Part shown: in pieces, positions 605-25,788 of the stretch | How positions within the stretch are numbered: the stretch's first letter is position 1 | Layout: each line of letters begins with the position of its first letter | Assembly: GCA_040285825.1 (NCBI GenBank) | Contig: JAUPSS010000009.1 | Coordinates: 186,001 to 250,000, forward strand | Length of the DNA stretch: 64,000 bases | From: Eukaryota sp. TZLM1-RC | Lineage: Eukaryota; Protista; Metamonada: BaSk clade | Reading direction: 5' to 3' | Position numbers and translations under genes: made by a program | The notes under the pieces: generated by a model | What the model saw: the letters and a program-made list of their open reading frames with translations, nothing else | What the model was told of the DNA's origin: nothing | The model's database searches: none

Positions 605-3600
605 ATGCCGCTTATTGATGTACCACAAACACCCTTTCCCTTCAAACGAGCCTCTCAAACACCTTTGTTGAATAAGGTGATCGAATATTCCCATATACCG
701 GTCTTCTTTCTCAACAACGGCAGCACAGGCACCAAAGAACCTCCAAGGACGTTCAAGAAGGAACCCTCAAATGATACTTCTCCAAAAACGAAATACAACA
801 CCCCTCATGACTATGAAATCCACGGTTTAGGTCCACTGACGGAGTTCACTGAAAACAATTCTCCATTGCTTGATGTTGGCAACTTAACCCCATCTTTAAA
901 TGATGATTCTCCTTGTCAAATGGCCTCTTCTGTTCCCAATGTTGAGAAAACACCAGTAGCCAATGTTCGCCTGAAACATCTACAAAACATTGACGTAACC
1001 CCTGAGAAGATGCCGAAAACACCTGCAGGGTTTCACTGCAATCATTTATTGCAACTATCTGGTATACCAAGACGATGGCAACGGTTGGTCAATGTGCACA
1101 ATGAAATCTCAGAATCAATGCAGGCAATTGATGTTATCGACAATGTTCCTCCTCCTCCCTTTGAGTGTCTCTCTAGCGAAAAAGCGCTTGAGCTGTGGTT
1201 AGTTGAGAATCGTTCATATGTCGATCAACGCCTTGCCTCAACTTCACTTCAGCAGTTCCGAGCAATTTGCTTCAAGAGAGTGTTAAACAATTCTGTCAAG
1301 TCGATACTCACCTCAAGTATAAAGGACTATGTTGCTGCTGATTGTGTCGTGGATGGAAATGCTGCGAAAACAGTCGTTTTTTTAAGCTTTGCTCGACTTC
1401 TTTCGATATCCGAAATATCAACTCTCATCGGTGAAAAACTTGCTCAACTGCAGGACTCTCAGTTTGCACGTTCTCTTTTCAAAGATGCTGGATGGCTACG
1501 TCAAGTAATCTGTGAGGTCATGTCAACCAACGATGAAGTCAAATCTATTCCTAGACCATTTTCGTCTCTTCATCTAGAGGACCCTCTCCTCAAACTTGCT
1601 TGTACTAATCCAATATCGTTCTGTTCCCGTATGATTAGGAGTTCTCTTCATGATTGGACATGTCATAGTTCACTTTACATTAATTCAATAATAGAAAAAT
1701 TGCACTTTTTTGATACAGATCCGGTTCTGAATCAAACAGTTATCACAGAATTATGTACAATCATTGAATCTTTTCCTTTCCAATTTTCTGAAGAAGAAGC
1801 AGTTGAATTTGATTCTGCCAATGGTTATGTAATTAATCTAAAAGCAATCATCAAAACTTTAACAAATATTATCAATCTGTTTGTTGATAATTTCACGGTG
1901 GAACCAACTGATGACTTGACTCAAATGATAGAGTTGATTGCCAAAAATGTTTTTCAAATTCCTTTCCAAAATTTATCTTTCAATTTGGCATTCTATCGAT
2001 TGGTCAAGTGCTTTTTAAACTACAATGATGATCATCTTGCATTTCTATTTCCATTGCATAGCTTTTCTCGCAACCAACATGATCAGCATGAGTTTGAGTA
2101 CATTACTGATCCTGGAAAAATATATCAACTAAAGTATGTATGTGATAGAGTTAAAGATTTTCCAAACTTTTGGGGGAGTTTGATCTTAGCTCAAGCCGCC
2201 ACCACTGCTTTGTCTCTCTCAAGGAGCTTTTCTGATGGCTTATTATTGTTGCACGATTCGTTATCTCATTTTCTTTGCAACTTGGAGACGATGGAGCTCA
2301 CCATAATGGAACAATCCCAACAAGAAGAAACTCAAAAATTCATTGAAGAAGTGTTTAATCTTTACGTTGTGGCATACAATGGAGTTAATGGCGTGAGCCA
2401 GGGTTTGTATTTACTGAACCAAATTGTGCTTGATGAGGATCTAGACCACCCTCTCTGTAAGATGCTCAATAATTTTTCCTTTTTAAAACCGGTTGTTTTC
2501 AAATACATAGCAATAGGACGTTCTTTGAGTCCAATTTCTGATGTAGTTTTGAAATTCAATCAATGCTTGATTGATTTAATTGATTTAATTGTTGCAAATG
2601 TTTCTTTTGCGATTGGTGATTTTAGAGGAGCATTGGATTGTTTAATTAAAAGTTGCACTTTTCAAAATGATTTCCATTTTTCTAAAAGCAAGATTTCAGT
2701 CACTTTTGAAGACCTGTGCTTGACATTCATTCAGTATTGCAAGGACAGATCCACAGATTCAGATTTTCTTATTGAAGTTGGTGATTTCATTCTAGATTTT
2801 TATCCATCTTGCCCATTGAAACTGCCCGTGATCAGTGAAATTCCAAATTATATGGCAGAAATTTTAAACAGAGTTCCAATTAAAAACAATGGCGATTCAG
2901 AAACAAACAATTTCGAAAGCGTATTCAAACAGCGATTGTCAATGCTATTTTCTAAATATCTACTCTGTCTTGGCTTAGAGCGAGATGAATTTTTGAATTT
3001 TGATTTTTCCAAATTAATTAAAGTTGCCACCATTTCAAAGACCAAAGTTCATGAATTCTATTCTTCATACCCCTTCATTTTAAATTTAATTACTCTTTAC
3101 GTTGACCAGTGCATATCCAAACAATGTTATGCAGATGCACTTCGATTAACAATGATAAATTTTTCCATAACAATGGTGGTCTTTTCTACCAACAAAGATT
3201 TACTTGCACCAACTCTCGCTCTATTGAAAAAAACGTTTTTGGCAAGGGGAAATTCAACTAGAGTCTACTTCAATACGTTACAAGATATCCAATTGGTGAT
3301 TACTAGTACTCCTATTAAAAGAATAATTACGACTAAAGTTTTAGAAAAATTAATTGATTTTGAACTTGCCAATACCAAAAAAGTTTTAGCTAACAGAGAC
3401 TCTTTATTTCAAGTGATTAGCGTGTATTCTTTTTATTTATTGGTTTTGGTACTCTTTGTCATTTTTGGACCTTCGTTACTCTCATTAGTTGATCATTGGC
3501 TCGATTATGCCCCAGTTTTTGTCTTTGGGGCGTTTCTTTTAGAAAATGTCATCTTTTTAATCTGTTTAATCACGACGTCTTGGCCGCTATCCAGCCCTTC

Positions 3601-5786
3601 ACATGACAAAATGCAAAAGAAGAAGTTTCTTTTGGAGAGGAAAGCAAACCTTAAACAAGTTTCTCTGCTCATAACATGTCACAATAGCGCCATTGCCGTA
3701 CCACCAACCTTAGAAGCTGCCCTCAAGGTATTTCCCCCTGAAAATATTTACATTTGTGATAATGGTAACAGTAAAGTACCCACCGATAATACTAAAGATG
3801 TTGTTCATTCCATGTGTTCTAAAGTCAATTACCTTTGGATATCAGAAGGTTCAAAAACAATGGCTTGCTACGTGGCATCAAAATTTCATGCTGTGACACC
3901 TTATGTGTTAGTTATAGACGATGATGTTTTGCTACCAGAAAAATTCTCAATTGATGTCTCCAAATTTGATGATGTAACAAAGGCAATTGCAATCACAATT
4001 GCAGCTGCCAACACAAGATCAAGTAACGGAAAACATCTCCCCGTCGTGGAATTTCAAAGTTTAGAATACCTAACAGCTGGATTTTCTAAATTATTTCAAA
4101 GTCAATATGGGTCTGCATTGTTCTGTCATGGAGCCATCGGATGTTGGGAAAGAAGTACCTATGTTAAGGTTCTAGAACGGCACAATGGAGTTTGTTTTTT
4201 TGTATTCTCCTATTAATTTCAGGTATTTAGGGCTGAAGATTTGACATGCGGGATAATTTTGGTTTGTTCTTTGTTTAATTAGATTTTAATCATAGCAAGA
4301 ATTAGGAAAAGGGTATAGAATTGAAACAATTGGACATGATGTAATCACCACTGTTGTTCCAAATCACTGGGTATGCAAAAGACTGTTTCGTTGTAAATGT
4401 CCAGAGGCTTCACTGGTTAAACAAAGATGTACTTCATGGGAACCTGGATCCCACAGAATTATTTTGAGAATGGTCAAGTTGTTACTGTTTTATTGGTCGA
4501 GGCCAAATTTGATTTTAAAACCATTCCTAATTTATGATCTTTATTGTGTTATTATGGATTATGTTAAAATATTGTTTATTTGGTATATTATTTGGCAAGA
4601 TCCTTGGCCTGTTTTTGTAGGTTTGGTACTTTCTTTTATCGTTTATGAAATATTATTATTAGTTTTCAACTATTTCACTCTGAGAAATCGTCCAGATCTA
4701 CAGAATCGTTTAATGATAATATTATCATTTCCTATCTACCGTTTTATTTCCCAATTGTTTAGAGTTGTGGGGCTTTTATATAATTTACTTTATTACGTAC
4801 CGTTTTCCAGGACTCCCGACGTTTATGCTAATAGAAACGATCTGCCAGAGGACGAAACCACTGATTACAATGTCCATTCTCCCATTGTACCAGTGGATTC
4901 AAACCTTCCTTTTAGTGAAAACATTGATGATGATAACGAGGAAGATCAGGCTGTTTGTGATCATTCCAAGATGGACTACACTTTAAACTCTTTGTTTTTT
5001 GTTATCAGGAAAATTTTGTTTGGATCAGCACTTTATGTCCCCTTTTTTGAGTCTAATCAATCATTAATGATTATTAATAATCAGTCAGAATTGATGAATA
5101 TCCTCCTTAATGTAGTACAATTCATGGTACCTTATGTTGAATCTGGAAAACAATCTGAATTGATTCTTCAGAAAATCATGGAAAATTGGTCATGTTCAAC
5201 ATCAATGTTTAAAAAATCTAAATTGTCTTTTAATGATTTAATATCTTTCCAATTCCTAAAAACCATTGAATTAATATTTGGAGCATTTTCTGATAAGATC
5301 AAACTGGTAGTACCATTTGAAGATGAAATTTTTGAAATATCTTCCAATTATTCATTCAAAAATGTAACTGAAATTACAAATAATGAAATTTTATTGATAA
5401 TCCCCAACTTAGAAATGCTGACTTTTGATACTCCATGCACATACTCCTATATCAGAATTAGGCCAATTACTAAGGAAATACTGATTTTCTATCAAAAAGA
5501 ACTATCAAAAAGTGTCAACAATATCGTTAATTTACTAAATTACAGAGTTCCGGATTGGAAATTTCAAGATATGACTTTAAGTCAAGCATTCATAATACAA
5601 GAAAATCTACAACTGAAAGGTTCAATTCCTGAAATTATTAATGCTAATGCATCATTTAGTATCAAAGATTTCTTATCAAAAATAGCAACCAAATCAGAAG
5701 AATCAGATGATGTGATGATTTACGAATTGATTGATGGTCAAAAAGTGATTGTTTCTGATTCATTTATTCAATTATTTGAGAAATAA
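605..5786 (+). CDS. Processive family-2 glycosyltransferase (polysaccharide synthase-like) with long N-terminal extension; exons 605-4189, 4223-4261, 4296-5786 (~1700 aa)
   Basis: TM helices, then LLITCHNS, YICDNG, GSK, VIDDD, QSLEY, HGAIGCW. Splicing two GT-AG introns adds FRAEDL (catalytic ED) and KQRCTSW (QxxRW-equivalent) and joins the 4464 ORF, with its C-terminal TM helices, in frame. Confidence 0.85.
4190..4222 (+). other. Spliceosomal intron, 33 nt
   Basis: GTTTGT...TATTAATTTCAG; contains the in-frame TAA that ends the 605 ORF; removal restores the GT2 motifs. Confidence 0.85.
4262..4295 (+). other. Spliceosomal intron, 34 nt
   Basis: GTTTGT...TTTAATCATAG; removal puts exon 3 in frame with the 4464-5786 ORF. 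Confidence 0.85.
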
Positions 5787-5851
5787 ATCAATTGTTCTTG
5801 AAATTAAATTCAACTCCAATAACTTAAATTAAATTCACCCAAACCCAATTC

Positions 5852-8800
5852 CTAACTGTTCCCAACAATACGTTCAAATTCCTCAAACACTGTAATAAAT
5901 TTCTGCTTACTTTCCTTTGCCAATGATTCAAGATGAACTTGAAGGCCAAGTAATTCTTTTGAACAATGTTTCCTATGAATTTTCAACACCGAGCCCAACA
6001 ATTCGAAATGTTGCTTCATCAAAGAGTTCAGCTCAATCAAATCAGCCTTGTATCCATCATCGAGAAATTGATTGACCTTATCAGGGTCAAGAAACACCTT
6101 GGCATATCTGGCAATTCCACCATTAATAGAAGCTTCTACACAACCTTGAAGAATCATAGAGACTGAATCCACAGATGTTAAGCTTGATTTTAATAAATCT
6201 TCAGAAATAACATCTCGGAGTTGAGAATTTTTTTGGGAAATGGTAACGCAGGCTGACTCGATAGGGCCTATGGACCTACTAAATTTATTAACAATTGGAA
6301 CCCTTATCAAGGAACACGGGAAGGAACGTTCGCAAACGAAATATTCAAATACTGTGCGGAGACATGTGACTTCCTTGTCTTCGGCATTGTTTTCATCAAT
6401 GATTTCAGCTCTACTGACCACAAAAACCTTGCATTCTGTGGTGTTGGCAGTGGTGGTGTATGCAATCGGGGGCTCTGATAACAAAGAATAGTTGGATTTT
6501 GATAAACTAAATGAACATTCACATTCATTAAAATCAGTACTGCACCAAAAACAATTTGGAAACTGCTTGTTAGACTTGCTGAGGAAAGGAACAGGAACTT
6601 CTTGATTGGATAATACTTGATTTTGTTCATTATTTTCAGTTAATTCAACTATTTGGTTCTGAATAACAGAATCGACAGGTTGAACTGAAGTGACTTGAAT
6701 TACAGGGTTATTTAGTTGCTTAAGGCTAACCTTGGATCTTTTTTGGTAAAGTTTGGCATTAGGAAATTCAGCTTGCAACTTTGCGACAAACTCAGCCAGT
6801 CGCTCCCCCACGCATGAATGGTAAACGTAATCAGTAACGGAAACACTACCCTTGACAGAAGGATCAGCGGTGTAAAAGGAAACTCGATAATAAGCTGGTA
6901 TCGGAAGTCGGTCAGAATACGACTTGACTACAATCGACTGATTGTGTAAACAGTCAGAAACTGTTTGAAAGTCATTGAATTTTAATGCCTCTTTCTTGAG
7001 CAAATCGTATGTTTGGAAAGACTTGGTTAAGAGGTAAGATTCTCTATATAATTCAGCTGCCTCTCTCAAATATTTAATTTTCTTAGAATAATCAAAAGTT
7101 GACAAACCAAGACCAACAGCATATGATTCTAAGCAAAAAGCTGCCTCAGAGAGATGTTTTGATTCCTTTAACAAATTTTCTAGGCGAATCATATGGAATT
7201 CATAGAGTTTTTTGAGTTTAATATTGGCTGAAAACTCTAATATCGACTGAGTGGCTTCTACAGTTTCTGGTAGCTGGTAAAGGGCTGTAGATCTGTTTTT
7301 AAGTTCAACTAAAAGTCCAAAAAGATCTTGACAAACGTTGACTAAAAATCGTGACACTTCCCAAATTTTGTCGAAATTATCAAAATTTAAATATTTGGTT
7401 CTCACTTCTGGCAAAATTGATCCAATTGAGGTAATAAAGGTCTGGTGACAATGACGGTGAACTGCTTCAACAAAGGAAGTCAGCACTATTCTTGGACAAT
7501 CAAATTCTGATAGAGGGTCAGAATTACTGATCAGGTCAACAAGAATCTTGATGACTATAGATACTCCATTCTTTCTGATTTCCGAAACATTACTTGATAG
7601 TAATTCCAAAGCTCTCGGCAAAACTTTGGGGTAAAGCACTTGAACATCTGAATAGTCTAAATTTCCCCAAATTTCAACGATCAAATTAGATAGATCTTGA
7701 CGATAATCATAGAGCCGAGTTTCCGAGTTAAAAACTGAGGGTCGGGAATGTGAACTAGGAACAGAAAGTCCAGACAAAATACACGAGAATAAAGAATTCA
7801 AAAGTGGAAGAGAAGGTGAAAGTTCTAAATTTTGATACACAAACCCCAAAATTTCATGAAAAAGTGCATTTGAAAGATTATGTAGGTGAACTGAGTTGGC
7901 TGGAAATGGAGGATAGTGATAAAAATAAGTAATTCCGAAAAACAACCAAGAAATAGAGATCACTCCATTGTTTAAACCCAAATATTTGGCAGAATTGACG
8001 GTTGTCGTATGACCTTGAAAATTTTCGTCGCAAGATTGAATTAAAGAATTCTTAATAACATTTTCCAATTGATTAAACTTTGACAGCAGTTTTATAGTAC
8101 CTACAACAAGCCCTTCCAGAGCATGGCAACACTGAGCTTGAGGGGGGTCTAGTGATCTAGTACTGAAGAGGGTAAGTAAAAGAAAAGGAATTGCTCCAAA
8201 AAGATAATTACTTACATCTGGTGTAATGAATCTCGAATTTAATTCTAATCCAGAGAGCAAATCAATAAACGTGATAATTGCCGAATGCCTTGTTGTTAAC
8301 GATGATAATAAGCCCAAAATACAGGTAACAATCGATGGAAAGAGAGAATTGATGTCAGAAAAATTAGGAAATTCATGTTTAATTATTGAGCTAATCCAAC
8401 AAAGAATTAATTCACTACTTTGAATGCTTTCGATTGAAACAACACTGATTAAAGGAGGGGCTATAGGTAGGGTAATTGTTAATGGGAAGTCTTCTCCTGG
8501 AAGGTAATTACCTGGATCAAACGGTTCTGGTGAGGGCAATGCTATCCAAGGAGCCAACGGGAGGAGGAGAGCGCCAGAGGACAGAGTAGTTGAGGAAAGC
8601 GAATCAAATAGAGAATCCAGAAAAAGATAACACTGCTGTGGAGTGACCAATTCAGATTTAGGTGAGTTACAGTACTGAAATCCTTTAGACAAACCCATCA
8701 AGATAGAAACCCTAGCATAGGGATCAAACCCACCAGGACTGGACATCCTTAAACAACCACAACAATTAATTAAAAGCTTATTAATTAATTTAATATCAAG

Positions 8801-11419
8801 AGGGGAATTATTTAACTTGTTTGCCAGTAAAAGAAAAGGAAAAAGACATCTTAAAGATCTTAGACCTTGAGCAATAGTGTTTTGCTTGACAACAGTACTA
8901 TTTTTGATTAATTCAGAAATTTCGATTAATAAAGTTAGTATTCTGTTCCCTAGCTGTAATGAGTAAAACTCTTCAAATGAAGGAAGTTTGTGAAGAATGA
9001 AAGCTTCAACTGAACCTCTGAATAAAGCCAGTCTGCTTTGGGTATCGTGATAGGCATGGTCAAAAAGTCGAGCAAAAGTCCAAATTACCATGTGACCAAG
9101 CTTGACCTGTAAAGATTTTCCTTGACCAAGAATGGCCGAGTCATCCTTGATTGGGACAGAAGAAGAGTATTCGTTATCGACAGCCAGAGCAGAAACAAGC
9201 CTAAAACAAACTAAGCCAAAATTCTGTAGAGTTTCCCCAATCGGAGCATCTAGGAGGACAGCAACGGCATTACGAACAATAGAGGGCTTGGGAGGGTTGT
9301 CATCAGTCCAATATTTTGGAGAAGAGATCAAGTTTGTGGGAACTAGTGGCGGACAGCTTAAATACTCAGTAGAAGCAGCGGACAGTGAAATATTCAAATA
9401 CTGGCTCATCACATAATCAGGAGAAGGCGTAAACGTGATATTTGATTGGCTCATAATAGTACTACGAGGAATATTCTTTAGCAAATCTTTGATAATAGAA
9501 TTAGGTGACGGTAATCTTCCATTATGAACTGTGTGCAAAGGAATTGGGTAATTTAAAAAAGACAAAAAGTACTCATCAGAGCAAAAGGGAATGAAGCCAA
9601 CAGCAAAGGCAGAATCCCTTCCTCGAGTGGAAGAAACATGCCGGAAAACAACTCGAAGGTAGCATTCATTGAGGAGTTTAGGTTTCAATTTAATAGCCAA
9701 GGTAATTTCAAACTTTGGATCATCAGAATGATAAACGACTGGCAATCGAACTGGGTGATCACGTTGGCTGCCGTCACCTTGAAAGCCATAATACTGCTCA
9801 ATGACACACGGTCCATACAAATGAGGACTAATCAGAGCACTGGAATCTTTTAGTTCCTTTCCATACCTATCCACAACACAAACTTCAGGTTCAATGTTCC
9901 TTGCTGAAGTTTTATTGTTGTTTTTGTAAGAGAGACAAACTGCTGAGTGGATAGTAAAGTAGATAGAATGCTTAGAGTACAATGAAGAACATGGTTCAGG
10001 CAGTGTTAAAAAAGGCAAGTTAACCAAATCATGGTGGTCATCCTGTCCAATCAATGCGGATAAAGACATTCGAACTCTAAAAGGTTGTCTTGAATTGGGA
10101 GGGTAACCATTGACAAGTTCCTTATGTAAAGAGGGAGCTTCGGTCGAGGAAGTAGGTGAAACGAGTTTAATATTGACATCAGAGTCATTAGTGAAGATAG
10201 TTTCAACTACATTGGAGACGTTGAAAACACCAACGGCGAGAGGAACCAAAACAGAAGTAAAGGCAGTGGGAGCATCTTTACCTCCTTTACGCAGGAGAGA
10301 AGAGTAATCAGAGACAGGTGGGGTAACGTGGCAAAGACGGACAACAAGGAAGATATCAGTGGAGAGAGCAATATCAGACTGAATGGAAGAAAAAAGAAAG
10401 GAAGAGGCATCGTGAAGAGAATTGTGAACCAACTTACCATCTTGATCTAGTGGAATGACCAGAGTTTCGGAGAGGGAAGCATCGTCAGAAGAAGAGTAAA
10501 GAAAGAGGTGAAGGTAAGAACGATGTGAGTGTTCTTCAGCAAAGCCGTCGTCAAGTGCTTTGGAGAAGAGAGGATGTGACGATGTGGTTGATGAAGATGT
10601 TCCTTTGAGAGAATCTACGCCAACAACTGAGAAGATACGGAGACGCAGGGAAAATACAGCAGCAGAGAGGAGGGTGGAATAAATGTCAGGAGAATCATCA
10701 GATAGTGGAGGAACAGGCGGTACAATCACCGGTGACTGACAAAGAGAATTGTAAGACGAAGATGAAATGAAAGACAGTGGCTTGGAGTCAAAATTATGAT
10801 CAGCGCGGTCTGAAAAGGGTTCTTCCAGATAGGAAGAACTTCGGAGAGATTTTGGGGATAGCGCGGGTAGATGGGAACCAAGAAAGGGAATGATGCCTAC
10901 ACTGTCAAGAGATGCGGGAGATCCGTCAGACGCTGACCTGAGATAGGTATCTAAACCCAGTTCCTGACTACCAGCGCCTATAAGATCGAGAATCTCGTCT
11001 TTTAAAGTTAAACTGGCTTCGTCATTGTCATACAACGTGGTTAACTGACGCCGCAGTGCAGCTAAGCGTTGTATATATTTATTCACCGTCTTAGATTGTT
11101 CAGGATATTTATTGACAACTGAACGCCATGTTTTAATTACTGAAAAAATCTCACTATGAATAATAGATGTAGTTGTGCTTACAGGTAGAGATAGAGGAGA
11201 CTGGGGGTTCATACTTAAGTCGGAAGTTTCTATAATACAATCAGTAGGGAAAATGCCAACCTTGGAACGGTCACAGTGGAGATGGCCACGGATCCATTGC
11301 TGTTCAAAGCGACGAAGAAGCACTACTCGATCACCAACATTTAAAGGCAGTTGATTAGGACCGAAAGGACAAAATGAGGATATACAAATGGCGGTGCCAG
11401 ATGCATCCAGCCAGCTCAT
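5852..11419 (-). CDS. DOCK-family Rac/Cdc42 GEF (SH3 + DHR1 C2 + DHR2; DOCK1-5-like)
   Basis: N-terminal SH3 (LPLNVGDRV...WIRG...GIFP), DHR1 (VVYHSDDPKF...LRVVFRHVSS), DHR2 (LQGCVEASINGGIARYAKVFL). Confidence 0.92.
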   Translation of the reverse strand: MSWLDASGTAICISSFCPFGPNQLPLNVGDRVVLLRRFEQQWIRGHLHCDRSKVGIFPTDCIIETSDLSMNPQSPLSLPVSTTTSIIHSEIFSVIKTWRSVVNKYPEQSKTVNKYIQRLAALRRQLTTLYDNDEASLTLKDEILDLIGAGSQELGLDTYLRSASDGSPASLDSVGIIPFLGSHLPALSPKSLRSSSYLEEPFSDRADHNFDSKPLSFISSSSYNSLCQSPVIVPPVPPLSDDSPDIYSTLLSAAVFSLRLRIFSVVGVDSLKGTSSSTTSSHPLFSKALDDGFAEEHSHRSYLHLFLYSSSDDASLSETLVIPLDQDGKLVHNSLHDASSFLFSSIQSDIALSTDIFLVVRLCHVTPPVSDYSSLLRKGGKDAPTAFTSVLVPLAVGVFNVSNVVETIFTNDSDVNIKLVSPTSSTEAPSLHKELVNGYPPNSRQPFRVRMSLSALIGQDDHHDLVNLPFLTLPEPCSSLYSKHSIYFTIHSAVCLSYKNNNKTSARNIEPEVCVVDRYGKELKDSSALISPHLYGPCVIEQYYGFQGDGSQRDHPVRLPVVYHSDDPKFEITLAIKLKPKLLNECYLRVVFRHVSSTRGRDSAFAVGFIPFCSDEYFLSFLNYPIPLHTVHNGRLPSPNSIIKDLLKNIPRSTIMSQSNITFTPSPDYVMSQYLNISLSAASTEYLSCPPLVPTNLISSPKYWTDDNPPKPSIVRNAVAVLLDAPIGETLQNFGLVCFRLVSALAVDNEYSSSVPIKDDSAILGQGKSLQVKLGHMVIWTFARLFDHAYHDTQSRLALFRGSVEAFILHKLPSFEEFYSLQLGNRILTLLIEISELIKNSTVVKQNTIAQGLRSLRCLFPFLLLANKLNNSPLDIKLINKLLINCCGCLRMSSPGGFDPYARVSILMGLSKGFQYCNSPKSELVTPQQCYLFLDSLFDSLSSTTLSSGALLLPLAPWIALPSPEPFDPGNYLPGEDFPLTITLPIAPPLISVVSIESIQSSELILCWISSIIKHEFPNFSDINSLFPSIVTCILGLLSSLTTRHSAIITFIDLLSGLELNSRFITPDVSNYLFGAIPFLLLTLFSTRSLDPPQAQCCHALEGLVVGTIKLLSKFNQLENVIKNSLIQSCDENFQGHTTTVNSAKYLGLNNGVISISWLFFGITYFYHYPPFPANSVHLHNLSNALFHEILGFVYQNLELSPSLPLLNSLFSCILSGLSVPSSHSRPSVFNSETRLYDYRQDLSNLIVEIWGNLDYSDVQVLYPKVLPRALELLSSNVSEIRKNGVSIVIKILVDLISNSDPLSEFDCPRIVLTSFVEAVHRHCHQTFITSIGSILPEVRTKYLNFDNFDKIWEVSRFLVNVCQDLFGLLVELKNRSTALYQLPETVEATQSILEFSANIKLKKLYEFHMIRLENLLKESKHLSEAAFCLESYAVGLGLSTFDYSKKIKYLREAAELYRESYLLTKSFQTYDLLKKEALKFNDFQTVSDCLHNQSIVVKSYSDRLPIPAYYRVSFYTADPSVKGSVSVTDYVYHSCVGERLAEFVAKLQAEFPNAKLYQKRSKVSLKQLNNPVIQVTSVQPVDSVIQNQIVELTENNEQNQVLSNQEVPVPFLSKSNKQFPNCFWCSTDFNECECSFSLSKSNYSLLSEPPIAYTTTANTTECKVFVVSRAEIIDENNAEDKEVTCLRTVFEYFVCERSFPCSLIRVPIVNKFSRSIGPIESACVTISQKNSQLRDVISEDLLKSSLTSVDSVSMILQGCVEASINGGIARYAKVFLDPDKVNQFLDDGYKADLIELNSLMKQHFELLGSVLKIHRKHCSKELLGLQVHLESLAKESKQKFITVFEEFERIVGNS

Positions 11420-12630: not shown

Positions 12631-14832
12631 TTATGAATAAAACTTGAAGGCTTTATAATCTAGTAATGATCCATCCAACAAATTTCCAAACCCGATAGAG
12701 AAAAGCTCTTCAACAGGAATAGATGTTAATTCAGAGACTACTGATAGTGCTTCACGTACAGTATAACCAAGAACAAAAACAACTTTTCTGAAATCATCAA
12801 TTACCTCCTGAATATCAGTAGGAGTCCCTCGAGTCAAGAAAGAAATAACTAAATTCACACGCAAGACAAACCCAATATCTTGCACAACGAAATTGTCAAC
12901 GCCAAGTTCTTTGAATTTCGCCAATAATCTAAGATTCCATGAATCAGTAGTGGCAAAATCTTGGTTGAACAATGCTAATTGTGCCTCCATATTGAAGAGA
13001 CGCAAGTAGCCAACTTTCAGGCATTTGGGGAGAGAATTAATCTTATTAAATAACAACTTGCGTTTTTTTGAACTCAAAACCTGTTTCGCTTGGCTGATTG
13101 TTCTACTAGAAAGTCCTTGTTTGAAAAATGAACAAGCCTTATTGATTAATTTTTCATCTTCCTGAATTTGGCGATCTCTTCTAGTCAACTGACATCTTTG
13201 GCAGTGGCAAGTAAAACCAGTGCCCTCTGAGAAGTTCTTCAACTGCTTGGCTCGATCATTTAATGGTTGAAGAGTGTCAATATAGGAAATAAACAATTCT
13301 TCACCTTTCTCAATATCAAGTGTAGCATAAACAAACATGAAATCTCCAATAAAGAAATAAGTACAATTAGGAGAGCAGGAATGGTTAAATAGAGACATCT
13401 TTAACCAAAACCCGCAGCCTTTTTCACTTGCTTCTATTCTAAACCAATTAGTTCTCACAGTTTGTTCAATATGACGTATATTTAAGGTATCATGGATTGA
13501 ATTATCAACATTGACTCCTCTTGCAAGTTGGAAAAACTCCTGCTTTTCAGTAGAATCATCAGGCAACAACGAAAGCTTCTGAATCGCTTTCCGAATAACA
13601 ACCTTCTGATCCATGGTGTCAGCGTGAGTTGAGTAAGGGTTAATATCCAACGACAATGGATCAAGACTTTCCTTTTTTGGAATATATGCAGCGAAAGCCT
13701 TCCCGGCCATGACAAGCGTTCCTTTAGGAATGGTTTTGATCGCCCTTATACCCCGTCCCATGGAATGTGTGTTAAATTCTTGAATCAGGGAAGAGAAGAA
13801 ATCTCCATGAGATCTGTCAAGGTAGTCATTGACTTTAGCTTCTTGTGAGAGTTGAGGGTAGTTATACCACCCATTAATCTCCTCTTGAGCCCTTTTTGCC
13901 TTATTGATTAATTGGTACCTTTCATTTTCTCTTATCAATTCCAATTCGTTAGCATGTAGCACTTCTTCAACCCTTCCCATCATAAGGGCAGCTGTAAGTT
14001 TTCTATAAGCCGCCTTCTCATGGGTGGGGTCGATCAAAAGTGCGTTGGAAGAAGCTGAATACGCAGCTTCCCAATGCTCAAGCTTAATATTACAGGCAGC
14101 AAGATTGGAGTTTAGAACAACCAATAAAGACTCAGGAGGAGAAAGTGAAAGGGCAGACGACCACAACTTTTCTGCCCGTTGATAATCCCCCTGGAGAAAC
14201 GCCTTGCTGCCCAACTCTTTAAGCTGGAAGGGATCCTGCGAAAGAGAGGTTTTTTTCCCTTGAGCCATTAACCACTCTTGTTTGCTGTTATAGCGAATGA
14301 TGCCGTGTGGATGATCACATCGAAGTAAAAGTGGATTCGCACGGCTGTCTTGTGCGTTCTTCATGAAAGGTTCTATCACGGCAACATAAGAACCCTTAGG
14401 AAAGTATATTGCGGGATCCTTGTCAGCAGGAACAAGGTTGTAGCTAGATAGTTGCATAAAATGGCTGTTGCTATCACGGATAAGTACATGGGTGGCAGTC
14501 GATCTAAAAGGATCTGCCACAACTTTAGCAAACAAAACATAGCCAGAATGGAGGTAATTCACCTTCTGGACAATTGAGGATAGAGTTATTGGTCTAAGGG
14601 TTTCCAAAGGAGGAATAACAATGTGTCTGATGGCCGAACCAACCGATTGTTTGACTAAAGACGAATGACCTTGGTGATTGGATGACTGTTTTCCCCCTTC
14701 TTCAAAAATATAACGATATACACTTTCAGGAGGAAGAACCCCAGAATAAATAGAAGGAGGACCAGCAGATTGTCTTTGTTGAATGACTTGTTCAAAAGGT
14801 TCCAACAAATCTTTAAACAAAGAATTCTGCAT
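12631..14832 (-). CDS. TPR + SET domain protein (SMYD-like lysine methyltransferase)
   Basis: TPR (LKELGSKAF...SNLAACNIKL), SET (GRGIRA, FNHSCSPNC, GEELFISY) and post-SET CHCQRC. Confidence 0.9.
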   Translation of the reverse strand: MQNSLFKDLLEPFEQVIQQRQSAGPPSIYSGVLPPESVYRYIFEEGGKQSSNHQGHSSLVKQSVGSAIRHIVIPPLETLRPITLSSIVQKVNYLHSGYVLFAKVVADPFRSTATHVLIRDSNSHFMQLSSYNLVPADKDPAIYFPKGSYVAVIEPFMKNAQDSRANPLLLRCDHPHGIIRYNSKQEWLMAQGKKTSLSQDPFQLKELGSKAFLQGDYQRAEKLWSSALSLSPPESLLVVLNSNLAACNIKLEHWEAAYSASSNALLIDPTHEKAAYRKLTAALMMGRVEEVLHANELELIRENERYQLINKAKRAQEEINGWYNYPQLSQEAKVNDYLDRSHGDFFSSLIQEFNTHSMGRGIRAIKTIPKGTLVMAGKAFAAYIPKKESLDPLSLDINPYSTHADTMDQKVVIRKAIQKLSLLPDDSTEKQEFFQLARGVNVDNSIHDTLNIRHIEQTVRTNWFRIEASEKGCGFWLKMSLFNHSCSPNCTYFFIGDFMFVYATLDIEKGEELFISYIDTLQPLNDRAKQLKNFSEGTGFTCHCQRCQLTRRDRQIQEDEKLINKACSFFKQGLSSRTISQAKQVLSSKKRKLLFNKINSLPKCLKVGYLRLFNMEAQLALFNQDFATTDSWNLRLLAKFKELGVDNFVVQDIGFVLRVNLVISFLTRGTPTDIQEVIDDFRKVVFVLGYTVREALSVVSELTSIPVEELFSIGFGNLLDGSLLDYKAFKFYS

Positions 14833-14866
14833 CTGATGTGTGGTTGATAATAAGACTAAATAAAAA

Positions 14867-15030
14867 GGAGTTAATTACAAAAACTTCTTTCAAATCTGCT
14901 ACTGAGAATTTCACACAAAGTGAATATTGAATAAATATCCCTAATAATTGTGTAAACTTCTCAGCACCAAGGGTTAGTATACACTAAACACCTTGGAAAT
15001 ACGTTGATTAAAACAGCTACTGCTGTCTTC
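14867..15030 (-). ncRNA. Candidate Fanzor omega-RNA (fRNA) scaffold
   Basis: Lies between the Fanzor stop codon and the element end. Three stems on the minus strand: AGACAGC/GCUGUUU (15011-15028); CCAAGG..UUAGU-GUAU-ACUAA..CCUUGG (14967-14996); UGCUGAGAA..UACACA..UGUGUG..UUCUCAGUA (14900-14966). Boundaries are inferred. Confidence 0.72.
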
Positions 15031-16883
15031 TTAGACGTCTCACACGCCTTGGCCTTCTGAATGGTTCTGGCCTAGTACCAGTGAAATACTCACTAATTGC
15101 AATCTCCAGCTGGTTTCTGGAGGCTGAGATGTCTCTAGACCAGTTGGTCTGACATCGAGGGCAATCGAACTTAGCGTTATTTACCCTTCCGTCATCATGA
15201 TAGATCTTTCTATGAAAGACCTTACAGCAATTCACATTTGCTGAGGTCATAAACTCGTCCCCGACTTTGACGCTTTCAAAGTGTTTTTTGATTTGTTTGA
15301 GAAATCTCTTTCGGGGGGATTTCACAGATTGACGAGATGGACCACCACCGCCATTGCCGAACCAAACTATAGTGTTTCTTCCTTCAGACAAGCGTTTAAT
15401 TTTGTTAATAAAACTAGTTAGTCTCTTTTGTCTTCGTATGAAGAAATCAAACTTATTTCTTCTCAGCTTTTTTCTTGCACCAAGCTGCAAATTTCCAGAC
15501 ATAATTGAAGCATATTCAGGCTCTTCCTCAGATTCAGGAACATAAGGTAAACTTATTTCAATCAGATACTCTTGGAAGCTCTGAGCGGAATAAGTGTTAG
15601 GAGTTGCTTGAGTGAGAGGAGGGGGGTGATTTAGTCTTCGTTCTTTTGGATTCAGTAGCAGTCCAGAACGTTCAAAAACAGTAGCAGAATTTCGGAAAGA
15701 ACCAGCAGTCCAACCACAAAGATTGCTGTGGTTGGGATCAATGGCTACAAAAAACAAATTTTCATCAGGATCTCTGTAATTGGGCTGTTGTTCCACTGGT
15801 AACCGCGGTCTTCTCTGTGGATTTGCTGTTCTATGGACATTGGATTTTCGTTTCCTTTCAGAGTTGTGAAAATCATAATTTCCAGAGGCTCGCCTGGGCT
15901 CAAATTCCGCTTTACTTGGCCTATTATAAGTTTTTCTTTCCTTCTGGGTAAACGTAAACCGCAAAGAATCACCATTTGAAAAAATGGTATAGTTAATAAA
16001 TTTGGATTTATTAAAATACCGATAAGGGTTGTTCAGAAGCTCTTTGTTTGCATTTAGTTTTGTGAAATAAGCTTCTGCTTCTTTAGTCAAGCTGCAGAAG
16101 CATGGAGACCAACTGGACAGTGGAGAGAGAGTGCCTTTTCATCACATCAGGGCAGTTATCTTCTAAAAAAGATAAAATGTTCAAGCCAGATTGAACGATT
16201 GTTGCAGCAGACTCCATATTGATGGGAAACCGTTCGTTTCTTATTGAATTTTCGAACAAATTTTGACCGCCACCAATATAGGCGTTGGCTGTCATATTGA
16301 GCCAATGGACCAAGATATGCTGGTGTATTTCTTGATACCATTGTAAAATTGACTCATCTGGCTGAATCCCTTGAAGTACACAGTCGGCGTATTTCTTGGG
16401 CCAGGGGCAATTTAGAAACTGAGCACAGCTTTTGAAAAAATTGCGTTTCCAGACGACAGGGCCGTCAGCAAGCAACTGACAAAAGGCTTCTCGCAGTTGG
16501 ATGGCTCGACTGCCAAGAAGAGTGGAAAGACACCAAAATCTACCACCGTCGGCTGAGGTGGTTTCATTCAGCGGTCGCCAGGGCCAAAAGTGCTGAACAA
16601 GGTGTTGTAGCGCTTGGTAAACCAAAGGATGGTTTTCAAATGGCCTCCTTTGTTTAGGCTCACTTTGGCAAACAAAGTCGAAACAGAGGCTCCAGAACTG
16701 GCTTTGAGTAAGCCACATTGAGTGTTCTGGGTATTGGAGCACAAAGAGTCGTGCTAGGTGAGTAGCATGAGCTCCAATACTAGCAAGAACTTGGAACTGG
16801 CGTTCCATTGCTTGTTGTGCCTCTGAGTCGAAGAACTGGTTGACAGACGCTGCCACAGTTGTAGTTTGTAGAACGTTATTCAT
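15017..16883 (-). CDS. Fanzor1 (TnpB-derived RuvC RNA-guided endonuclease), ~620 aa, split by one frameshift near 16083-16135
   Basis: RuvC-I VAIDPN, VWFGNGG, RuvC-II GDEFMTS + CC, CPRC zinc ribbon, RuvC-III WSRDISASRN, RPEPFRR and a basic tail. The upstream ORF (first ATG 16883) overlaps it on the same strand. Confidence 0.88.
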
Positions 16884-17283
16884 GGCAGTCAACACAGAAC
16901 GGAAACAGTCAGAAATGATTGAAAATTTGTTTCCTAAAATTGAAAATTTGTTGAAGTCAATCAATCTTATAGTTGTCAATTCAAAGTAAAGTTAGTTACA
17001 AGTGTTTATTAATGAGACATATGGTTCAAGATTACTTTCTGAATATTTTCCTTTCTTCAGACAAGAACTACATGTTACAAAAGTTGGTGAGTGGAGTTTG
17101 GTTGGGTTGTCATCATTGCCCAGATTCGTAATTGAATTTCATTTCATCACTTACAACATTTCATCACTTACTCTACTACGAACCTTCTCCTACGAATCCT
17201 TGCTTGCAGCTACTACCACTCTTTATGTCGGAAATTGAGAATCACTTTTATTTTAAGTAAAGTTTTTTTTTCTTCCTTCCTAT

Positions 17284-17904
17284 ATGGAATATAACCATGA
17301 ATACAAGATTGATTCTGGAATCAAATCAAATATAAAAGTCTCTACTATGCAGGGGCACTTATTTCGTAGAATGATCAACACAGAACTGTTACTACATTGT
17401 CATAGGTCCCTTCCCTCAAGTTCTTTTGTGGCTCCCTGGACTTCATATGAATCAGTCTGGCTGTCTTCCCTCTCTTCTATTCCTGATGTTCCACACCTTG
17501 TATTAAAGCTACAGAAGAGTCTACTTCCTGCATGTTTTCATCCTCAGTTCCAAAACTTTTCCAAACACTGCTACACGTTTTTCAAGAGAGTCAAATTTCC
17601 CCTTCTTTTCTCCAATCTGAACACTAAGGCCGAGAACAAAGCCTTAGAAGAGCTGATGCGCCTTCGTCATGAGCCTAATGATGCAAGAAACTCTGATGGA
17701 AGACGCTCTGGATCTCGTAAGGTCGCAACTGTTGCACAACCTAACTTTAAAATAAATGCTTTTTCTTCTCATACATGCTTTGGATCAATGTCTACCACCA
17801 ACAAGGCTGCAAATGCAGAATATATTGCAAATATGGCAAGTATTCAATCAAAACTCAGGGCCAACAATTTTTATTCACTTGGAACAACGTACTATTTTAG
17901 CTAG
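17284..17904 (+). CDS. Unassigned ORF inside the MULE element (possible captured host fragment)
   Basis: 206-aa ORF overlapping the transposase remnant; no MULE DDE motifs recognisable. Confidence 0.3.
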   Translation: MEYNHEYKIDSGIKSNIKVSTMQGHLFRRMINTELLLHCHRSLPSSSFVAPWTSYESVWLSSLSSIPDVPHLVLKLQKSLLPACFHPQFQNFSKHCYTFFKRVKFPLLFSNLNTKAENKALEELMRLRHEPNDARNSDGRRSGSRKVATVAQPNFKINAFSSHTCFGSMSTTNKAANAEYIANMASIQSKLRANNFYSLGTTYYFS

Positions 17905-18367
17905 AACGTTCAAAACAAATGACAGCAATGATGGTTTATATGAAGTTGTTGGTTTAAGAAACAGTACTTTTACCGTAGACTTTATCAACAAAAAATGTAG
18001 TTGTAATGGGTGGCAAAATGATGGATACCCATGTACTCCCAGTTTGGCTGTTTATTTAAAGAAGCAAGTTGTGCCATTTGATGGTATAGCTAAAATTCAT
18101 AGTTTAGAGTATTACAAAAAGTCTTTCGAAACAAGTATTCACATTGTTCCTGATCGAAGTGAATGGGAGTTCAAGTCTAAATTTCAAATGGTGGATCCTC
18201 CTAGTGTGCCCAAAGTGGGTGGACGACCACGCAAGAAGCGAATTGATGCCTTTTCTCCACAAAGAAAGAGACAAAGTGTTGCACTGGTACAAGATGATTG
18301 GTTATCCTTGTTCCAAGAAGACAATGTCCCAGAACTCATCGACGTGGACGATGTTTATCCAGACTGA
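17850..18367 (+). pseudogene. MULE transposase C-terminal fragment (degenerate SWIM zinc finger)
   Basis: GLYEV...FTVDFINKKCSCNGWQNDGYPC(TP)...YYKKSFETSI...PP...GRPRKKRI. The SWIM His is lost and no DDE domain is present. Confidence 0.85.
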
Positions 18368-18690
18368 GACATGGAAAATCATTTCGACTTGCTGAATGAC
18401 GATGTGGTATAAACTAGTATTAATAATAAACACTTTGATGACAAATGGTCTTTATCAGCTCTAAAGTGATATAAACTCTTCGTATAGGTGATGTTAACAT
18501 TGATATAACCTCGACTGAAAGTAGCAGTGTCAGGAGAATGGCTGATGGAATATAAGCAAAGGTAGCCCGAAACATGTGCATTTTTGAAATTGCAAAGTGA
18601 AAACGTGAGCATTTTTGTAAATCACCCAAATAAAAAGGGGAGGATTTCCTCTTCATTCTCAGTGCTAGTAATAGATTCAAATATGCATAT

Positions 18691-24151: not shown

Positions 24152-25788
24152 GACAAACTGTCGTCAATCCTTACCTTTCAACGTTAATCAATAGTCTCAG
24201 AAATAAGGTTGGAGAATTTTTGGGCGCGAGTCTGAACAATACCACCTGGTGTGGAGCAAACATTACACCGCTTGCATTCAATTGATACAATATCACATTC
24301 TGTTCAATAGATTAGACTAAATTCTATTGTTGTGCTTTTCATATAGCTACTCATATGGTTTTCTCTGTCGTGGAGAATCCAATAATTGACTTATAATAAA
24401 TAATAATAAATAATTGATAATACTCACAAAATCCAAACGCACGACGAATTGAATTTTTTGTTCAATTATTTCAACCTTTATTAAACTTACACACTTGACA
24501 AAATTAACTCATAACTAATGGGACGAAATTCATTGAACCAAAATTTCCTCTGCAAAATCTTGATCTGCTTGCTGTCTAGATAAGGCTTCTCTAATTGGAT
24601 TGAAAAACCGAGGTAATCTATCAATAATGGCAAATTGAATTCGAGAGCGCCACAAAAGGATATCAAATCTTTTCATTGTTTTTCCTTGAACCATTTTTTG
24701 GAAATTATTGAAAAGAGTTATTGCATCATGTAATGAAGAACGATAAGTTATCAATTTCCAACAATTCAGAGCTCGACGCAAAATTTTATTAATGAATGTT
24801 GAATCTGAAAAGGAATTTAAATTTGGTTTAAATATGCTGCTACGTGTTGATGGCTTTCAAACGTCAATTAAAATTGCTTTTAGTGTACCCATAGATGGAG
24901 GTTATGGTAATAATTGGAGTGATGCGTTTTTGAAAACTTATTCTGATAAAATTGCTAAGTGTTCAATTTGAAAAGAATTAAATTTAATTAACCAAATTGT
25001 TCCTCTCGTTTTTTGTGTTCATGGGGGTTTTTACACTAAAACAAAAATACTGTTTGACCAATTTGGATGGAATGAGGTAGCAGTTGAAATTAGTTGTATC
25101 ATTTTGAAGAATAGCTTTAAATGCCACAGTGCTTTTAATTATATACTTCAAAAGATAAGAGAAGATCGTCAGTGATGGTGGTACTGCTATTTTAGTTTTC
25201 AAATAGTTTCTCCTCAATTGTTTTTGAAAACAACAACCACAAAACCAGTCACTATCTTACGCATTACAACACAACAACATGTTATAGAGCATGATTCATC
25301 AGCAACTTTGTTTAAACAAAAGCAGGTGACATAATTCAAGAAATAATTGTCCTCGCCTAATAATTAAGTTATACAGCTTAATTTTTAGTGAACTAAAATA
25401 GTATAATAAAATATTATTTAAAAAGGCAGCAAAGACGGGATTATTAATAAAATAGTATTTATTTAATGGTCAGGGATCGTAACGGACTAACATAGTGTTG
25501 TGATGTCTTTGATTCCTTTTGTTTGACAACCAGTTGCATTACCAAAGTTTATCATTGTTTTATCGTAATAATGTTGTAATTTAAGATCTCTCATTTCAAA
25601 AAGATGAACAATTTGAGATTGTGTCATTTGTTAAAACATGTATTAACAGAAACCTATAGAGAGGCTATTCAATATCATAAGTCAGAGTAATGTTGAAATC
25701 TTAGCTTAAATCATAGTTTTATTTAATAATCCCCACATTTAATCAGACACGCTATCAACACTTACACAAGAAAAAACAAAAAACCCGC

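Follow-up and report, generated by a model that had tools for sequence, protein, structure and literature searches.

A putative Fanzor1 pseudogene probably nested in an unrelated Mutator-like element of the metamonad Skoliomonas litria

We analyzed a stretch of 64,000 nucleotides (the window) from contig JAUPSS010000009.1 (positions 186,001 to 250,000, forward strand) of Skoliomonas litria (Eukaryota sp. TZLM1-RC; genome assembly GCA_040285825.1). S. litria is a haloalkaliphilic anaerobic metamonad (Metamonada; PMC11603281), and its genome was assembled from Nanopore reads with Illumina polishing (bioRxiv 10.1101/2023.05.03.539051). A 3.8-kb region of the window, located between two host genes, contains a gene of the Fanzor1 family and a Mutator-like element (MULE). 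An earlier note on this DNA had described positions 14858-18636 as a single Mutator-borne Fanzor1 system comprising a nuclease, a candidate omega-RNA, terminal inverted repeats (TIRs) and a target site duplication (TSD). We found that the nuclease is a Fanzor1, and our results indicate that the region probably combines two independent repeat families.

Positions are those of the window unless a locus label precedes them. L0xx denotes fetched genomic loci (the window locus is L007), P00xx related proteins, and X1, X2 and X3 sequencing runs or contigs. For comparisons between copies we used approximately nine loci with a Fanzor and two further loci with a MULE, all from the S. litria genome. The features of the region, with strand and basis, are as follows (ORF, open reading frame; RE, right end; pLDDT, predicted local distance difference test score; AF2, AlphaFold; RRM, RNA recognition motif).

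14858-14868, no strand: left TSD copy of the MULE-like element (exact 11-mer, abuts the terminus)
14870-14901, plus: left end of the MULE-like element, TIR (14870-14883) and 18 nt (alignment with L013 from 7852, its left end)
14902-15016, minus: 3' non-coding end (RE) of the Fanzor unit (copies ~95-99% identical up to 14902 and unrelated beyond)
16090-15017, minus: C half of the putative Fanzor1 pseudogene, 357 aa, with part of WED, RuvC I-III and zinc ribbon (Pfam TNB, profile, AF2, Foldseek)
16118-16133, minus: (TC)n tract with the frame change (three-frame translation, relatives, six copies)
16083-16883, minus: N half of the putative Fanzor1 pseudogene, REC-like helical domain (AF2 pLDDT 83.8, VIA-align)
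16979-16083, minus: Fanzor ORF, N half, 298 aa (open reading frame)
17197-17235, plus: CBP20/NCBP2-like gene fragment in the Fanzor unit, divergent (translation matches the 109-aa RRM gene)
17236-17570, no strand: segment specific to a structural variant; the unit is cut off at 17570 (L011 and L012 matches)
17571-18627, plus: body and right end of the MULE-like element, with SWIM-like ORF (17756-18367) and right TIR (18612-18627) (L008, L013)
18628-18638, no strand: right TSD copy (exact 11-mer)

The nuclease gene

We found that the protein encoded in the window is a genuine Fanzor1. The gene is on the minus strand, in two half-ORFs that overlap in different frames, and we searched and folded the N and C halves separately. 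The probable start codon is the ATG at 16883-16881, placed by comparison with P0001 and P0009.

The C half contains the three RuvC catalytic residues at the codons where the earlier note had placed them: D118 (15737-15739), E279 (15254-15256) and D320 (15131-15133; C-half numbering). It also contains the zinc ribbon described there, with cysteines C288/C289 and C310/C313. In an alignment of 45 proteins (the window C half and 44 homologues), D118, E279, D320, C289, C310 and C313 are in nearly invariant columns. The C half matched the Pfam family Cas12f1-like_TNB with E 1.6e-5 and 25.4 bits, just below the cut-off of 26.3, and 40 of the 45 aligned proteins match this family. An exhaustive HMMER search identified 103 relatives of the C half.

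A phmmer search with the C half alone found no match in the PDB, and a profile was needed. The profile built from the 45 sequences matched SpuFz1 of Spizellomyces (8gkh) with E 1.5e-70 over profile positions 9-529. Next were the Fanzor1 proteins of Parasitella (PpFz1) and Guillardia (GtFz1). Fanzor2, TnpB and Cas12f scored far lower, and the match to Fanzor2 (9b0l) was limited to the C-terminal part. The AF2 model of the C half had a pLDDT of 80.6, and its top Foldseek matches were SpuFz (2e-8; E ~1e-8) and PpFz, followed by Cas12j, Cas12f and TnpB.

The N half had no Pfam match. In Foldseek, the best Fanzor rows for its AF2 model (pLDDT 83.8) had E values of 0.8-3, none of them significant. 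With VIA-align, the model matched the N-terminal parts of seven Fanzor1 entries (SpuFz, PpFz and GtFz) over 196-233 residues with Z of 10.3-11.7, and the next unrelated chain had a Z of 5.2. A Z of ~11 for a helical fold is soft evidence alone, but we find this match between predicted and solved folds convincing because the gap is clean and only Fanzor1 entries are above it. These structure comparisons, which the earlier note had proposed as a check, bear out its assignment for both halves, and its description of a lineage-specific Fanzor1 family in a little-studied flagellate holds.

Borders of the Fanzor unit and of the MULE-like element

We found that the Fanzor family has a right end of its own. 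The 3' alignment breaks after the same terminal base in the window, in L002 and L003 (one duplicated site), in L004, in L006 and in L012, and the flanks are unrelated. A sixth independent junction is provided by a short-read contig (X2) with a loose end at 14902. All six junctions are at the base equivalent to 14902, which is 33-35 bp inside the TIR claimed in the earlier note. None of the other Fanzor loci examined lies in a MULE or carries MULE TIRs. The earlier note had expected other copies to share these TIRs and to have different TSDs; instead, the other copies have different ends, an outcome that it had named as refuting its reading and as making the link to the MULE coincidental.

The window copy of the Fanzor unit extends from 14902 to 17570 (2.67 kb) and is truncated at its 5' end. 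L001 to L006 are 95-98% identical to the window over 14902-17235 only, and our first reading was that the unit is truncated at 17235. This was overturned by L011 and L012, from which the unit reaches 17570. The nearest kin are the two inverted copies in L012, which lie outside a MULE; their identity to the window is 98.7-98.9% over 14902-17281, with further matches at 17386-17423 and 17531-17570. L011 has 98.4% identity over 17068-17570. In both loci the unit runs on past the equivalent of 17570 to a left end, which the window copy does not have. The window unit is a structural variant in which part of the second gene has been replaced.

Complete Fanzor units of ~3.1-3.2 kb were found in L001, L003, L005 and L012b. 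They contain the Fanzor1 gene, a divergent CBP20-like gene, their own left end and a hairpin-forming right end, and there is no transposase in the unit. The left end, from five copies, is roughly (T)CTTGAGCTGTGGTTGATT. The termini are CTTGAG... and ...CTCAG, with T-rich bases (CCTT, TCTT or TGTT) just upstream of the left end. No TSD was found in the two copies with both ends intact (L003 and L012b). The 3-nt sequence CTA is present at both junctions of the window copy and is too short to mean anything.

The second gene of the unit encodes an RRM protein of ~109 aa and is present in every full unit, divergent from the nuclease gene and ~350 bp upstream of it. The protein is clearly homologous to nuclear cap-binding protein subunit 2 (human CBP20, 1h2t, E 1.4e-29), with a longer C-terminal part in L004 than in the other copies. 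This may be a captured host gene, perhaps with a bidirectional promoter. Copies were identified by RRM homology at the following positions.

L001:5323-5652, minus: CBP20-like RRM gene
L005:5319-5648, minus: CBP20-like RRM gene
L003:5098-5475, minus: CBP20-like RRM gene
L004:5254-5532, minus: CBP20-like RRM gene

Fanzor units were also found in large inverted duplications that include the flanks. L012 contains a head-to-head pair (2344-4936 and 5763-8982), and L002 and L003 are two ~6.6-kb segments, 98.5% identical, that lie on contig 4 with ~18 kb between them. Both cases are segmental palindromes, not independent insertions. In L001, a different and highly diverged Fanzor C-terminal relic (4450-4752, plus strand; 43% identical to that of the window) forms a head-to-tail tandem with the Fanzor unit and stops ~100 nt short of the unit's left end. 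Run X3, labelled as a different organism (organism B) of the same study, yielded contigs over 14913-16739 with the Fanzor unit and none with the flanking host DNA. Six of its eight pieces had 0-7 differences from the window per 105-399 nt, and one piece had 22 in 151 nt. The Fanzor family is common to the isolates or was very recently exchanged between them.

The sequence on either side of the Fanzor unit belongs to a MULE-like family. The inverted repeats of the window element (GTKAWTTACAAAAA...) are real: 14870-14883 matches 18612-18625, inverted, at 12 of 14 positions. The flanking duplication is also real, although the exact repeat is 11 nt and not the 9 reported earlier. It occurs twice only in the 64-kb window, both times abutting a terminus, and the true TSD measures 9-11 bp, according to the position chosen for the start of the TIR. 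L013 is a complete MULE-like copy of 1,053 bp, with TIRs that match at 23 of 26 positions and an exact 8-nt direct repeat abutting its ends, and it shares 17578-18627 with the window in pieces. L008 shares 17785-18625 and the same right end; no left TIR was found in L008, which is a 5'-truncated copy. The right end is ...TCAC(CC) in all three copies, and the left end of the window element has a 21-nt deletion relative to L013. Neither L008 nor L013 contains a Fanzor between its ends.

The SWIM-like ORF gave a weak but consistent signal. Its match to Pfam SWIM had an E of 0.0025, below the cut-off, and the His of the CxCxnCxH motif is replaced. An Atlas feature search gave 30/30 matches in the SWIM family set (best 0.94), and tblastx matched the ORF to the SWIM region of a genomic MULE (E 1.6e-4). 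No MULE DDE domain (PF10551) was found by Pfam in the ORFs of the window, and the ~1.1-kb copies are non-autonomous. A MULE with PF10551, of a distant family, is present in L006. The earlier note had called the ORF the remnant of a SWIM transposase; it is part of a short non-autonomous element and not what is left of a transposase that once served the Fanzor.

We found that the MULE-like element continues across the Fanzor unit. Window positions 14870-14901 and 17578 onward align to positions in L013 that are ~12-20 nt apart. Because the MULE-like element is otherwise colinear with the Fanzor-free L013, the Fanzor fragment is best described as a simple insertion. The Fanzor part differs from its nearest kin by 1.1-1.3% and the MULE part by 6-11%; the Fanzor part is probably much the younger of the two.

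We consider it probable (roughly 0.85) that the window contains a dead, 5'-truncated Fanzor1 copy nested in an unrelated, ~1.1-kb non-autonomous MULE-like element, and that the two represent independent repeat families. The single delimited system claimed previously does not exist; the window Fanzor is a genuine but dead copy of a new lineage-specific family.

Several points weigh against this interpretation. The MULE label rests on the TIRs, the length of the TSD and a weak, degenerate SWIM signal, in copies with no DDE domain. At the insertion site, ~12-20 nt do not align cleanly to L013, and the 5' end of the Fanzor could conceivably have been lost by a later deletion. A composite copy, or an intact Fanzor copy of the window family, might exist beyond the loci compared. 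The sequencing contigs that cover the locus are DNA and all come from one study; none is recorded as RNA, and a run of unrecorded type (X4) gave no contig over it.

It might also be proposed that a Mutator element captured a Fanzor gene, either like a Pack-MULE or as a MuDR-type element, and that 14867-18627 was moved as one unit by a MULE transposase. The real TIRs and TSD bracket the whole block, and there is precedent in Rhizopus, Phycomyces and Mucor, where Fanzor1 genes are inside MuDR-type TIRs with 9-bp TSDs (PMC3627910). However, a captured gene would not be expected to have as its left junction exactly the terminus of its own family, since a breakpoint of this kind should be random. 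The six junctions with unrelated flanks, the other Fanzor loci without TIRs, the two MULE-like copies without a Fanzor, the 21 nt missing from the left TIR and the unequal divergence of the two parts also argue against capture. We consider capture very improbable.

The frame change and the order of events

We found that the Fanzor gene is interrupted in the window. The frame changes between the N and C halves inside the (TC)n tract, and a conserved SPxxSxSPxF stretch is split over two frames. The earlier note had implied this by referring to a joined ~620-aa protein and a repaired ORF but did not state it; the interruption is confirmed. P0005, P0012 and P0013 are single uninterrupted ORFs through the homologous stretch. 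The tract is identical in all six aligned copies of the window family (6/6), and other copies have further private indels of 1, 7, 8, 14 and 39 nt. Short-read contigs X1 and X2, from two runs, span the tract and have no indel in it; the frame change is thus not an error of the long-read assembly. The window copy does not have an uninterrupted Fanzor1 coding sequence and is a member of the family by descent. As judged from the reading frames, the window gene is most probably a pseudogene. Because six of six aligned copies share one frameshift, the aligned family would likewise be a set of pseudogenes that spread after the nuclease was broken.

The annotated S. litria proteins of this family are all fragments (127-548 aa) or a bridged model of 614 aa. 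The bridged model is the public annotation of 15017-16883 (L007:4671-6537), in which 614 aa are derived from 1,867 nt, implying an intron of 22 nt. This raises the possibility that the gene is functional, either through such an intron or through programmed +1 frameshifting on the (TC)n tract. All six aligned copies keep the frame change, both half-ORFs are otherwise open in the window, and the site contains a 22-nt GT...AG stretch (16093-16114). However, we rejected the intron: it would remove residues that align to conserved coding sequence in the uninterrupted ORFs of P0005, P0012 and P0013, and the annotated intron is for that reason an artefact. In addition, the private indels are like those of decaying pseudogenes, and substitutions in the terminal hairpin are uncompensated among copies. 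A functional gene is therefore very improbable. Longer introns were invented in the annotation of P0009 and P0001, and these models, too, are artefacts built over pseudogenes.

Chance matches in AT-rich intergenic DNA, with no MULE insertion at all, can hardly account for the TIRs and the direct repeat: the repeat is A-rich, the window TIRs match at only 12 of 14 positions and the transposase domain is absent, but only one other site in 128 kb (both strands) matches the right terminus at 12 or more of 14 positions, a repeat of at least 9 nt abutting such a terminus has p ~4e-4, the joint chance of TIR and repeat is ~1e-5, the right end is common to L008, and the alignment of the 32-nt left segment and the right kilobase to the complete L013 element, with its own TIRs and repeat, effectively refutes this explanation.

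The nested arrangement of the Fanzor copy in the MULE-like element could have arisen as follows. First, a ~1.1-kb non-autonomous Mutator-like element with TIRs of ~26 nt and a degenerate SWIM-like ORF would have inserted into a ~90-bp intergenic spacer, with a target duplication of 9-11 bp. A copy of a separate Fanzor1 element would later have entered this MULE, 32 bp inside its left end. On arrival or soon afterwards, this copy would have had an exact 3' end (14902) and a 5' end truncated at 17570; the truncation was apparently made at insertion. The Fanzor family would have spread after its nuclease was broken and would have to be moved in trans.

The host genes that flank the 3.8-kb region are a divergent pair.

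ATG at 14832, minus: SET/TPR host gene (left flank of the region)
18691 (start), plus: coiled-coil host gene (right flank of the region)

Once the nested elements are removed, the spacer between the two start codons is only ~90 bp (14833-14857 and 18639-18690). The insertion site of the MULE-like element, at distances of 26 and ~50 bp from the two ATGs, is on this account a very compact shared promoter. No second copy of the Fanzor or of the MULE-like element was found in the 64-kb window. A member of another multi-copy repeat family is present at 24477-24649 (L007:14131-14303). This family adjoins Fanzor or MULE copies in L001 (2122-2626), L004 (10925-11156), L005 (9190-9708) and L006 (5565-5891), and it flanks the MULE of L013 on both sides (6003-6177 and 8918-9019).

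The right end of the Fanzor unit and comparison with known systems

The 115 nt from the stop codon to 14902 are conserved among copies and form two hairpins, the second of which closes on the terminal base. Folding of 118 nt gave a z-score of -3.8, and folding of 259 nt, which include the last 140 nt of the ORF, gave -5.0. We found no covariation in these hairpins among family copies: substitutions are uncompensated, as expected for decaying copies that are ~95% identical. This comparison left out the relic 3' ends of L001, L003 and L013, which are too degraded. Rfam gave no match in the element with E values of up to 1, nor any in four related loci at gathering thresholds.

Intact relatives are present in a second assembly, GCA_040285805.1. 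P0012 (604 aa) and P0013 (592 aa) are encoded there as single uninterrupted ORFs. Their elements end in the same motif, TTGAAAnnCACAG vs GTGAAATTCTCAG in the window, and have the same terminal-hairpin layout. The closing pairs differ and are compensated (CUGUG/CACAG vs CUGAG/CUCAG). A 355-nt non-coding block, 89% identical between L009 (4511-4864) and L010 (4581-4935), lies ~140 nt upstream of each intact Fanzor ATG. The block is partly GC-rich and structured-looking, with no ORF and no Rfam match, and the two intact Fanzor genes are too diverged to align as DNA despite sharing it.

In SpuFz1, the guide consists of 14-15 variable nt that come after a conserved region of 75 nt (Saito et al. 2023, PMC10432273). 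Because the 3' layout of the window family matches that of SpuFz1, it is plausible that an omega-RNA is encoded in the conserved, structured 3' region. The same structure could equally well be a DNA hairpin to which a transposase binds. Any omega-RNA that the family made would have its candidate scaffold between ~15150 and 14902 and take its guide from the adjoining 15-20 nt below 14902, which in the window are MULE TIR sequence. The candidate region of the earlier note is thus conserved and structured as proposed, but it stops at 14902 and not at the end of the claimed element.

These borders matter for any reconstitution. The earlier note regarded the ends as defined well enough for this purpose; a construct made from 14858-18636 would have the wrong ends (the 3' end is 33-35 bp inside), a frameshifted gene and a copy with no left end. 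For biochemistry, the intact P0012 and P0013 are far more suitable. With the right end defined to the base, the start of an omega-RNA guide can be predicted. In the literature searched, we found no paper that names both Fanzor and metamonads; on this basis, the many Fanzor1 copies of Skoliomonas extend Fanzor1 to a new deep lineage of eukaryotes. The apparent spread after loss of the nuclease frame and the 3'-anchored, truncated insertion both bear on how Fanzor elements move and on whether they need the nuclease to do so.

A further possibility, which we put forward tentatively and with some doubt, is that the Fanzor unit itself (not the MULE) is a new kind of Fanzor1 carrier in metamonads that inserts 3' end first, and that the intact orthologues in GCA_040285805.1 are active RNA-guided nucleases. 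Its basis is a unit of ~3.1-3.2 kb with no TSD or transposase, a 3' hairpin layout kept across diverged families, a host-derived, head-to-head CBP20 gene, exact 3' ends with 5' truncations, and spread that continued after the nuclease was frameshifted. If so, the 592- and 604-aa orthologues would extend active RNA-guided nucleases to a eukaryotic supergroup not sampled before.

We compared the window family with the solved Fanzor1 structures of SpuFz1, PpFz1 and GtFz1 (PDB 8gkh, 9ceu-9cf3). Like these nucleases, it has a TnpB-type RuvC with the D/E/D triad, a zinc ribbon and a helical N-terminal REC with the same fold. Like SpuFz1, it has a conserved non-coding stretch from the stop codon to the right end of the transposon, followed by a variable flank. 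Unlike the solved proteins, to which it is 9-19% identical, it has CC and not CxxC as the first metal-binding pair, is frameshifted in the six aligned copies and has a carrier with no long inverted repeats.

In some Fanzor1 families the element's own ends are MuDR-type TIRs with 9-bp TSDs (Bao and Jurka, PMC3627910). The window resembles these in having a Fanzor1 between Mutator-like TIRs, a TSD of ~9 bp and no MuDR transposase. In contrast to those families, in which the TIRs are the ends of every copy, the TIRs here belong to a separate 1.1-kb family, and the window Fanzor family has different ends and is outside a MULE in every other copy examined.

The Fanzor carrier appears most to resemble the Helitron2-type Fanzor1 elements CRe-1, CRe-2 and CRe-3 of Chlamydomonas (PMC3627910). 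Like them, it has no transposase, an invariant 3' hairpin end, many copies truncated at the 5' end, full-length copies without a TSD, T-rich sequence before the left end and a captured host gene. Unlike in those elements, the hairpin is at the very terminus and not subterminal, and the termini fit neither TC...CTRR nor the described asymmetric terminal inverted repeat (ATIR) rule. There was no RepHel partner, and there were no shared Helitron ends, among the loci examined (the whole genome was not searched), and because no partner element was found we leave the carrier unclassified.

The unit also resembles TnpB-only IS200/IS605-like elements, which have a nuclease gene and a structured right end with no TIR or TSD, in which the transposase is supplied in trans and the nuclease is dispensable for movement. 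It differs from them in its eukaryotic host, its Fanzor1-type protein of ~620 aa and the eukaryotic cap-binding gene that it carries. The exact 3' ends, 5' truncations, absence of a TSD, T-rich left flank and captured host gene point to a copy mechanism that is anchored at the 3' end and supplied in trans.

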